Of a stretch of DNA of 64,000 nt, positions 2,101 through 5,135 are shown piece after piece. The stretch comes from Amoeboaphelidium protococcarum X5 (taxonomy: Eukaryota > Fungi > Aphelidiomycota): the NCBI GenBank assembly GCA_023515725.1, contig JALDTO010000162.1, positions 348,476 to 412,475 on the forward strand, read 5' to 3'. The notes beneath the pieces were generated by a model that was given only the letters and a program-made list of their open reading frames with translations, searched no databases and was not told where the DNA came from. A program made the position numbers and the translations under genes. Position 1 is the first letter of the stretch, and each line of letters starts with the position of its first letter.

Positions 2101-2205
2101 GTACTTTGATTGAATTAACTACAGTCTATTTCATCGGTTTGTCCGACAAACATTACTGTATATATCAGGCGCGCCTTTCGGCGCGGCAATTCCATTAAGG
2201 TCTGC
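2101..2205 (-). ncRNA. Candidate Fanzor omegaRNA (scaffold plus 3' guide)
   Basis: CGCGCC-GAAA-GGCGCG hairpin (2185-2170) over the last codons, then a TACAGT...ACTGTA stem enclosing GTTTG-TCGGA-CAAAC, ending at the putative element end. Confidence 0.55.
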
Positions 2206-4480
2206 TACCATGCATCGCGTAATGGCGGACTATTTGAGCCATACTCCTGTAAGCATTAACGTCCCGATCTACAAAGACGTCACATCCAGTGTTTTGGCAG
2301 TTTGGGCAAACTCCAAATCTTGATTGGACTCTTCGGTTAAAACGATCAGGACATTCGTACGATAGGATTTCTGGACCATCAGCTTTGATGCAGACAGTTT
2401 AAGCCCGGCGACGACCAGGCAGTATCTTCTTTGCCTTCTTGTGTCGGCACCTCATCACCACTTCATGCTCCCATTGAAGATCTGCATGACATAATGAGTG
2501 CTGCTTGCTAGTGTGGAACTCCGGCGTTATAACTACCAATGCCCGACGACTGAATTCAAACGCGAATTTTCTCACCGGAACAGGAGGATTACCACGCACG
2601 TGCTTCACACCAGCGTCACCAAGCGCAATTACCGGAGGCTTATCTGGAGGTGAAAACTTGCCATTAGATTTACGCAGTTCGCGTTTCCTCTTCTTTGCAG
2701 CTTTACCTCGGCGCCGATCGTTGATTTTAGGCACTGGTGGCTTTGGTCTGCCATACATCATGTTGATGACTTTACCAAACGCAGACTTGGTCGCGCAAAA
2801 TCGTCGGAATCTCCAATTACGATGGAATGATCTTGAGTAGAAGGCATAGACGTCCTCAAAATATCTGATGTAAACATCGAGATACTACTGGCAAGTGTTT
2901 GATTAGGCCATATCTTACTCCATCAGCGTGATTTCAGTTGGTTTGATATGCAACAGCTGGGCTTCAGACTCTGTAGTCAATGCAAGACGTTACCAGTATC
3001 CAGTAGATATGTGGCCCGTTTCTTTTAGCTCCTTCTTGGCTTCTTTTAGCGTAATTGCACCATCGACGTCCGCGTCGTCGCCCCACACCAGTACGTTCTT
3101 CTTACCAGGGTCAACGCCAATCAATCGAGAGCCATCTAATCTTTGTTGGAGATTCCGACAGTTTTCCAAAGCAAAAGCCCCAACAATTACTTGAGACACG
3201 TCAATGCTTCGTGCTTTTCTCTGCAGGTCTGAAGCTTCATTTGCATACGCTTTCCCACCTTAATCTGAAACAGACACGGAGCACGCAAAACCATCAGAGG
3301 TGATACTGACACTGACGTTTTTAGATTGAGCCATCCGCTGTTAAAGACCCAAAACTTTAAGCCTTAGGATACATTACCGTTGATCCTCCTCCTCTTTCGA
3401 CTCCTCCCCCAACTGATTGCCCAGGCGATACTGTTCAAATCCCCACTGGGCCAAAACTTTATTGTCAAAGCAGATGTGGCGCGGAACATCGGTACCAGTA
3501 GGGAAAATCTTGAATGATGGCAAGCCTAGCTCCTTGAGAGTTTAACGCTAATACATCAGATATTGGACCAAAACTTTCTAGCCCTCCTAATTCTGAAATG
3601 CATGGTGTGCTCTTGATGGCATGTATGTTTGATGGGTATCACGCTACTTCATCTTACCCGATTTCCATCGCTTGAAACCGATGAGTCCATGCAGCTGACT
3701 AGGAGATTATGCTTTTCTTTTACTGTATCTCCTTCTTGGAGCTCTGTCTTTAAAAGAAGTGGTGACAATATCCAATAAATGGTGACGATGCATTGAGACC
3801 AAGTGCCGAACTTCTTCAACTTATAACAATTGCAGCAACTCGTCCTTAATAGCAGCATCTTATTGCGCAATTGTCTCCTCATCTTCACCAGCATCGTAAT
3901 CAGGAGGCAAATGTATCTGAGTCGCGGGATTAATCTCCAAGTACTCGCCCCCAAAGTGTTCCATCGTGTTAACAGCTTCTTCAGTCAGCAAAGAGTTGAG
4001 CAGCTATAGAAACACGGTAAGCCTTCGGCCTTTTACATTAAAGGCCTCCATTTAAGCTTTAATCACCTTCTTCTAGTAGACCCATATAGTTTCAGTCAGA
4101 TGCCAGGTGATAGCTTAAATAATCTTACGCGCTTGAAACACGTACAGGTTAGGATTTGGACCAATCAGGCTTTCGTGCCTCAATCTCTATCGCACTTCAG
4201 GAGCGATTGTTTCAGCCAGTATTCGTGTGTGTTCATTGTCACGATGAAACGCAGAGTTGCAAAGATACTCCAGCATTGACGCGAAATACTGCTAATGAGA
4301 TAGCTCAGGTAGTGCCTTGCCGGCTTCATTCCATACATTAAGACTGAGATAGATCAGACGGGATGCAAAGGTGAGGTGCACTGAGCTCAGTCGAATCTGT
4401 GGTATCAATCTCTCTTTATCACCATCGCTAAGATTCAAGACAGTATTTAGTTTGCATTTACGTGTTACTTTCTTTGCCAT
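2165..4480 (-). CDS. Fanzor1-type (TnpB-derived) RNA-guided RuvC endonuclease, 771 aa
   Basis: Uninterrupted ORF under TAR=Gln. Motifs: FKIFP..RHICFD, ITSDGFACSV, RuvC-I LIGVDPG (D ~3110), FYSRSFHRNWRFRRF, IALGDA, RuvC-II VITPEFHTSKQHSLCH (E ~2520), CPNC zinc ribbon, RuvC-III VDRDVNA (D ~2262), terminal RP. Confidence 0.92.
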
Positions 4481-4542
4481 ATCTTCTTATCTATGAGAAG
4501 TTAGATAAGAAAGAGGAAGAAGAAATAGTGAACTGTCTGGCG

Positions 4543-4551
4543 CTTTTATAG
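4543..4551 (-). promoter_or_regulatory. TATA box upstream of Fanzor
   Basis: CTATAAAAG on the minus strand about 65 nt upstream of the ATG at 4480. Confidence 0.45.
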
Positions 4552-5135
4552 GCCTTTTCAACAAGTCAGTAATTGGAGTTTGCTAGCCGCTGTAAGAGCC
4601 GCTTTTAGTAACGATGAAATTGAATTTCATTACTTGGCACTGTTTGAAAATTTCTAAAGTCAAAAACTACATAATATATAGGAAAAGTATTCTTATTACT
4701 ATAATCCATCACTTGATTACTTAAATCTAAAATCGATGGCTTTGAAATTGGCACTTTCCATCACTGGAGAATGAAATAGAGAACTTTGCGGCATTATCTA
4801 AACAGACGTCACATAAGTTACTTATAATTGTTCAAATTACACGTATGCTTCGCATTACGAGTTCTAATACTATCTGTTGTAGGGAAGTATCGTGCTTAAA
4901 ACTTCGTCATTATTTTTTGTGCCCAAAACACTTTTCCGTGATCGGACATTTTACTGAAACGAACTGTAATGTAGAAATTTTCGTTGCCATGGTAACACAT
5001 ATGCATAGTTAACGATGGATATTTTTATACTTCTTTCACTCACTTCAACTGCACTCTGACAAGACATATTATTTTGTAATAAATCAAAACAACTTGAATT
5101 AATTTCATTCTTAATCTGTAAGGTATTCGAACAGA

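Follow-up and report, generated by a model that had tools for sequence, protein, structure and literature searches.

The question raised by this locus is whether a reading frame that is fragmented under the standard genetic code encodes an RNA-guided nuclease of the Fanzor1 family and, if so, what kind of element carries it and how that element comes to sit where it does. The window is the whole 64-kb stretch of Amoeboaphelidium protococcarum DNA that was analyzed; the element and all of its features lie on the minus strand. Coding is dense across the window when TAR is read as glutamine (table 6) and nearly absent under the standard code. With the table 6 translation, positions 4480 to 2165 form a single ATG-to-TGA frame of 771 codons, and the preliminary description of an intronless 771-aa ORF with about 23 TAR codons can be made precise, the count being exactly 23 (14 TAA and 9 TAG). 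Under the standard code the longest stop-free piece of the same frame is 161 aa, or 119 aa counted from its ATG. We read TAR as Gln because 7 of these 23 codons are CAR in a diverged subfamily of the element (L012, see below), three TAR/CAR swaps separate a host uroporphyrinogen decarboxylase (UROD) gene from its homeolog, the public record of the 771-aa protein is translated with TAR as Gln, and the reassignment was already known for A. protococcarum (PMC5304391).

Pfam and PDB-sequence searches with the stop-free pieces returned no match, nor did single-sequence searches with the full protein against PDB sequences, Pfam and NCBIfam, including its TnpB models. Homologs were reached by searching cluster representatives with 198 aa from a sister copy, which led to a 771-aa protein whose cluster includes the window's own product in NCBI nr (P0037); this database record was used for the full-length analyses, the stop-free pieces being searched separately. 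A profile built from 21 homologs aligned its three acidic motifs with those of PpFz1 (3e-17), SpuFz1 (7e-16) and GtFz1 (3e-12), which were its only matches below an E-value of 0.003. When an AlphaFold model of the protein (pLDDT 78, pTM 0.76) was searched with Foldseek, all seven matches with E-values of 0.001 or less were Fanzor1, the best being SpuFz1 (3e-14; Z 18.1 over 542 residues, rmsd 4.8), while Fanzor2 scored 0.05. Structural Z scores were 14–18 over ~480–550 residues for Fanzor1 chains, 9.5 for Fanzor2 and 9.1 for TnpB, and the whole-chain WED-REC-RuvC-TNB fold is nearer to Fanzor1 than to Fanzor2, TnpB or Cas12. The preliminary description had called the protein a Fanzor1 nuclease and proposed a profile search and structure prediction against SpuFz1 and TnpB; both ranked Fanzor1 top, with strong matches solely to Fanzor1 structures, and the profile and modeled structure support its identification as a Fanzor1 with an intact frame. 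In keeping with this, the gene uses the host code, is flanked by host genes and lies in a eukaryotic DNA transposon within a eukaryotic genome. Bacterial contamination and a Fanzor2/IS607 element were ruled out by the host code, the terminal inverted repeats (TIRs) and TA duplication described below, the Fanzor1 fold and the absence of a recombinase gene. Viral structure models are only as near to the protein as the others (12–14% identity), so we see no close viral donor, and scans of metagenome and viral contigs gave one weak match each (21–22%). On one metagenome contig, read with the standard code, a 28% identical Fanzor1 is followed, 87 nt after its stop, by a weakly similar end, TACAG...CTGTA (L081:3226-3341; E-value 0.35).

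All three RuvC acidic residues and the ITSDG motif (aa 393) named in the preliminary description could be located in the 771-aa product. Asp457 of RuvC-I (GVDPG, aa 455; 3110–3112) aligns with the DPN/DPG motif of SpuFz1, PpFz1 and GtFz1, and Asp740 of RuvC-III (DRDVNA, aa 738; 2261–2263) with the catalytic motifs of the same proteins; Glu654 of RuvC-II (TPEFHTSK, aa 652; 2519–2521) has the rearranged position directly upstream of the zinc finger that marks the D-E-D triad of Fanzor1, seven residues before the first ligand, H661. The motif of Bao and Jurka, D-X(125,275)-[TS][TS]-XX-zinc finger-X(5,50)-RD with a conserved Gly and Glu, is also present with fitting spacing (D457, T657-S658, R739-D740, and G621 in ALGD), and the three acidic residues are conserved across four sister families. 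The helix previously written as FY..R..RF exists as a motif that reads FYSRSFHRNWRFRRF, but the literal pattern has no match. A basic insertion noted earlier, RRRGKAAKKRKRELRK, is found at aa 589–604 (2669–2716); in the clade alignment this stretch is common to the clade and falls at about the position of the PpFz1 RuvC insertion, and it may be a nuclear localization signal or a nucleic-acid contact. As for the zinc ribbon, the ligand region and the extra Cys/His residues are indeed there, but its predicted ligands are H661-x2-C664 and C725-x2-C728 (HxxC/CxxC) instead of the four Cys of the canonical C4 ribbon, and PF07282 finds no match. As sister family B has a C4 finger and passes the PF07282 cut-off, the finger here looks like a variant rather than a lost domain. 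An insertion in the zinc-ribbon (TNB) domain (2351–2449) adds C678, H680, C697 and C710. Nine homologs, the most distant at 23% identity, retain all three Cys, and seven of these also retain H680; we regard the insertion as a candidate second metal site.

Was this gene hidden by its genetic code, as had been proposed? That explanation fails because the exact protein, along with near-identical copies, sits in NCBI nr among the hypothetical proteins, and nr proteins were the source for the main surveys, by Saito et al. and by Yoon et al. The companion claim, that the protein had been overlooked, holds up better, and it is probably unreported as a Fanzor. Among the entries listed in Saito's table there are two A. 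occidentale proteins and none of A. protococcarum, the accessible parts of Yoon's supplementary files contain no A. protococcarum protein, and a literature search found no main text linking Fanzor with Amoeboaphelidium. The first filter of the Yoon survey was the PF07282 profile, and the likelier reason for the escape would be the absent match to PF07282 and to the NCBIfam TnpB models, the PF07282 miss being probably caused by the His-for-Cys change and the Cys/His-rich insertion.

The gene is carried by a non-autonomous DNA transposon of the Tc1/mariner type (2845 bp; 2122–4966) in which Fanzor1 is the sole gene. A search of its own genome identified at least 11 copies including that of the window, the ten others being 98–100% identical, with identical ends and unrelated flanks; the full copies share the boundary bases AT-TA-CAGT ... 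ACTG-TA (4970 to 2120 in the window). The TIRs are 25 bp long and imperfect: the left (4942–4966) reads CAGT-n3-TTTCA-n6-TGTCCGA and is near-identical to the ends of Tc1 (DDE_3) elements of the same genome, and the right (2122–2146) doubles as the 3' side of stem 2 in the predicted omegaRNA. A TA target-site duplication is present at both ends of all full copies, the right duplicate lying at 2120–2121. For one copy of the diverged subfamily in a second strain (L076), the corresponding site in the window's genome lacks the element and has just one ATTA, so the duplication consists of TA, and AT is part of the target. Empty sites were not found for the window copy, where the homeolog has unrelated DNA in the gap, or for copy L077. 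The preliminary description had mentioned neither these ends and copies nor the ATTA target and omegaRNA fold discussed below.

The whole 771-codon frame is kept in eight copies (that of the window and seven others), shortened in two and disrupted by an internal duplication in one, and an additional 97% copy has a 512-bp insertion. The L012 subfamily (86% identical) encodes an intact 772-aa protein and has at least five full-length copies in a second strain; the element itself is seen in contigs of both strains. Between the subfamilies dS is 0.42 and dN 0.068 (dN/dS 0.16, with 0.14–0.19 in both halves), and among the youngest copies dN/dS is about 1, i.e., near-neutral drift. That the element is active or very recently active is the best explanation of these data, and since recent mobility is coupled with purifying selection, activity of the Fanzor1 is, as judged from sequence, likely as well. 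One copy in the other strain (L073:1537-1550 and 4364-4370) is bounded by a 7-bp direct repeat, TATTGTC, with its left TIR joined via a 3-nt microhomology and without the TA-CAGT end; the join, a single case, resembles one made by repair or template switching. A truncated Fanzor copy is followed by frames that, by eye, resemble the Gag and protease of a Ty3/gypsy-type retrotransposon (L063:4945-6801).

The 5' internal region (4481–4941), presumably promoter and UTR, is too short for a transposase, and a transposase hidden in it was ruled out, its 460 bp having no similarity to Tc1 or pogo interiors. Compared with Tc1 elements encoding a DD34E transposase, the TIRs are identical at 24 of 28 bases (L061) and 22 of 26 (L058). 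No intact cognate transposase was found in the 3 of 17 DDE_3 loci that were read, these three being Tc1 elements with matching TIRs that are frameshifted or partial. A 1.24-kb Tc1 element with a DDE_3 match and related but distinct TIRs (G000 C162:108574-109816) is a candidate transposase source.

The genes to either side of the element in the window are conserved, but the slot between them varies: L069, homeologous to both outer flanks, has an unrelated frame of 685 codons there. The neighboring region at 1393–2037 (a 235-codon frame at 1274–1981) has an 86% copy on another contig (L018/L070). At 3–1022 lies the UROD-like gene, recognized from its motifs, which is 92% identical to its homeolog, consistent with a hybrid genome.

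The target motif 5'-ATTA (4967–4970), whose TA is the left target-site duplicate, is strikingly regular. AT precedes the left TA in 18 of 19 independent insertions, compared with 10% of the TA sites in the window, and was already present at the empty site of the sister copy, while the right flank starts with AT in 0 of 17 cases. An insertion common to the two strains follows AT in one of them and GT in the other, consistent with a later mutation. Five Tc1 ends have similar TIRs but lack an intact Fanzor gene, and none of these was preceded by AT. Because this one-sided AT mirrors the SPu-1 element, where CA precedes TA and the TAM (target-adjacent motif) of SpuFz1 is CATA (PMC3627910, PMC10432273), ATTA is predicted, by analogy, to be the TAM of the aphelid protein.

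The element ends only 45 nt past the stop codon, and its last 81 nt form two stem-loops (fold z -4.4) that we predict to be the omegaRNA scaffold. Stem-loop 1 (2169–2187), inside the last ORF codons, has 7 bp with one bulged C and a GNRA loop; in stem-loop 2 (2120–2160) an internal UACAGU pairs with a terminal ACUGUA around an inner hairpin, closed by the right TA. The adjoining right flank (2100–2119), which differs in every copy, would be the guide of the window copy, its position set by analogy with SpuFz1 and its length of ~15–20 nt taken from known Fanzor1 systems. Both sides of a pair have changed across the sister families in three of the seven pairs of stem 1 and in 6 of 13 overall, and in an alignment of the four families 96% of cells pair, a level never reached by shuffles, with slid controls at 18–57%; as there are four families only and the structure was drawn from the same sequences, this covariation is support for the scaffold and not proof of it. 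The partners in stem 2 change together, from UACAGU/ACUGUA in family A, that of the window copy, to UACUGU/ACAGUA in B, UACAAGG/CCUUGUA in C and UACAA/UUGUA in D. Pairing in stem 1 is kept while the encoded peptide varies (RAERRA, RAGRRT, RVVGRT, RAVGRI), ruling out that this hairpin is conserved for protein reasons alone; the TGGAAT upstream of it may be protein-driven (Trp-Asn). Rfam had no family matching the fold, and a tRNA search found none.

The sister families differ in the elements that carry them. In family B the Fanzor1 is 43% identical and the element, of 4.56 kb, looks autonomous, with an intact 391-aa pogo-like DDE_1 transposase and the ends ATTA-CTGT ... ACAG-TA (L078:2264-6819, L079 and L071 in the second strain; G000 C207/C249), and has the same omegaRNA fold. 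Family C (41% identical) is a 3.3-kb unit known from two copies only (L072:1665-4940 and L080:2166-5440), with a strong 5' hairpin and no TIR detected, possibly a Helitron2-like transposon, and family D is known from one locus. A genome scan with the omegaRNA fold model matched 33 places, of which five lack a Fanzor protein match in the vicinity (G000 C264:1907126, C98:638201, C264:101998, C200:106528 and C235:152197); these are candidate stand-alone "ghost" scaffolds. At L060:4133-5026 a Tc1 end identical to L061 over 33 bp is followed by a decayed Tc1 N-terminus and then by a family-B Fanzor 3' remnant with the omegaRNA fold, either a chimera or two adjacent remnants.

The architecture of the element repeats that of the prototype SPu-1 of Spizellomyces punctatus and of the mariner-borne Fanzor1 elements of Bao and Jurka. 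SPu-1, too, is a single-ORF element with TIRs (~30 bp), a TA duplication, many recent copies and no transposase inside, and its left TA is likewise preceded by a conserved dinucleotide, CA in SPu-1 and AT in the aphelid (PMC3627910). Its SpuFz1 likewise takes its omegaRNA from the right TIR, with an SL1 and SL2 scaffold of the kind predicted from sequence for the aphelid element; in both SpuFz1 and PpFz1 the omegaRNA consists of a 7-bp SL1, one SL2 and then the guide (PMC11423790), and the 3' TA of the duplication belongs to the Fanzor1 scaffold (PMC13565253). SpuFz1 differs in length (633 aa against 771 aa, at 13–15% identity) and in its TAM, CATA as opposed to the predicted ATTA, while the aphelid element is set apart by the 45 nt from stop to end, an SL1 in the coding frame, imperfect TIRs, the HxxC/CxxC finger, the Cys/His insertion and the TAR = Gln code. 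The fold and the triad recur in PpFz1 (Parasitella) and GtFz1 (Guillardia) (profile E-values above; PMC11423790, PMC10432273). The omegaRNA of PpFz1 is 75 nt long, its TAM is ATN, and its RuvC insertion, a 100-aa cyclophilin-binding domain, lies roughly where the aphelid protein has the short basic helix; the TNB insertion also differs. The GtFz1 omegaRNA overlaps C-terminal codons, as predicted here. Fanzor1 is similarly carried by PUl-1, PUl-4 and PGv-1 (PMC3627910), Tc1/mariner elements of both autonomous and non-autonomous kinds that have TA duplications and share their TIRs with true mariners, whereas the aphelid has four sister families (41–43% identical) in one species, in Tc1-ended, pogo-encoding and apparently TIR-less elements. 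What is novel is the clade itself, with its predicted ATTA TAM and variant zinc domain, and the presence in one species of families whose scaffold can be seen to co-vary with the transposon end.

We consider it quite probable that the protein is a working omegaRNA-guided nuclease in a non-autonomous Tc1/mariner-type transposon. A transcript running through the ORF end and the right TIR into the flank would yield a ~70-nt scaffold with a 15–20-nt guide, as for SpuFz1 and PpFz1, and the Fanzor1 bound to it would cut DNA reading ATTA plus the flank, a sequence intact solely at an empty site, whether left by precise excision or on an element-free allele. Repair from a filled copy would then restore or spread the insertion (homing), so that insertions behind ATTA would be retained, with transposition supplied in trans by a Tc1-like DD34E transposase acting on matching TIRs. 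Tc1 excision often leaves footprints, and since the predicted guide would not cut these, restorative homing would be limited. The protein could also be a catalytically weak or dead passenger that the transposon retains, whether as neutral cargo or for RNA-guided binding, as its first zinc ligand being His rather than Cys, its large insertions and the dN/dS of about 1 among the youngest copies might suggest. Near-neutral drift in young copies is, however, normal for transposons, and the acidic triad kept in four sister families, the dN/dS of 0.14–0.19 in both halves between subfamilies and the covariation of the scaffold make such a passenger very improbable.

What produced the ATTA bias is less clear-cut, and that it arose from retention by homing strikes us as an evenly balanced proposition. 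Its main competitor, to which we give appreciable but lesser credence, is that the transposase sets the bias, with unequal TIRs orienting an intrinsic preference to which the Fanzor TAM has adapted. The bias of 18 of 19 holds even in copies 99–100% alike, which is much to demand of post-insertion selection alone, and in prokaryotic IS elements TAM and target preference co-evolve. Yet family B, whose ends differ and whose pogo-like transposase is unrelated, is also found behind ATTA, as judged from its insertion flanks, and Tc1 ends with nearly the same TIR that lack an intact Fanzor gene have AT in none of five cases. The pattern is moreover one-sided (0 of 17 right flanks), and Tc1/mariner target preferences are usually palindromic. 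A further alternative has the Fanzor helping to choose or make the insertions, by marking or opening ATTA sites into which the element is copied by repair, with little need of a transposase. One-sided ATTA in two transposon classes, the lack of an intact cognate transposase among the Tc1 elements read and the repair-like junction of L073 in the other strain, with its 7-bp duplication via a 3-nt TIR microhomology, would all agree with this. Against it, every other copy ends in the clean TA-CAGT...ACTG-TA expected of a DDE transposase, each guide matches its own flank alone and would leave new sites untargeted, family B retains its own transposase, and the negative result for a cognate covers few DDE_3 loci; we think this alternative quite unlikely. 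Scarcely less unlikely is the broader proposal that Fanzor sets the location of its elements, one lineage having moved among Tc1-ended, pogo and TIR-less elements, re-pairing its omegaRNA and keeping the one-sided ATTA while directing insertion or copying by break repair.

These proteins form a divergent and apparently unreported Fanzor1 clade (13–15% identity to the solved ones), of a kind that screens based on the zinc ribbon miss despite presence in nr. Scaffold, guide boundary and TAM can be predicted from natural copies, which makes the system ready for a standard assay, and its host, an algal parasite, is a culturable eukaryote with a live burst of copies, insertions that differ between strains and sister families in different transposon types. 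It is thus a good system in which to study the role of Fanzor in eukaryotic cut-and-paste transposons, in particular the homing of empty sites, and the way in which an omegaRNA adapts when its gene changes transposon.
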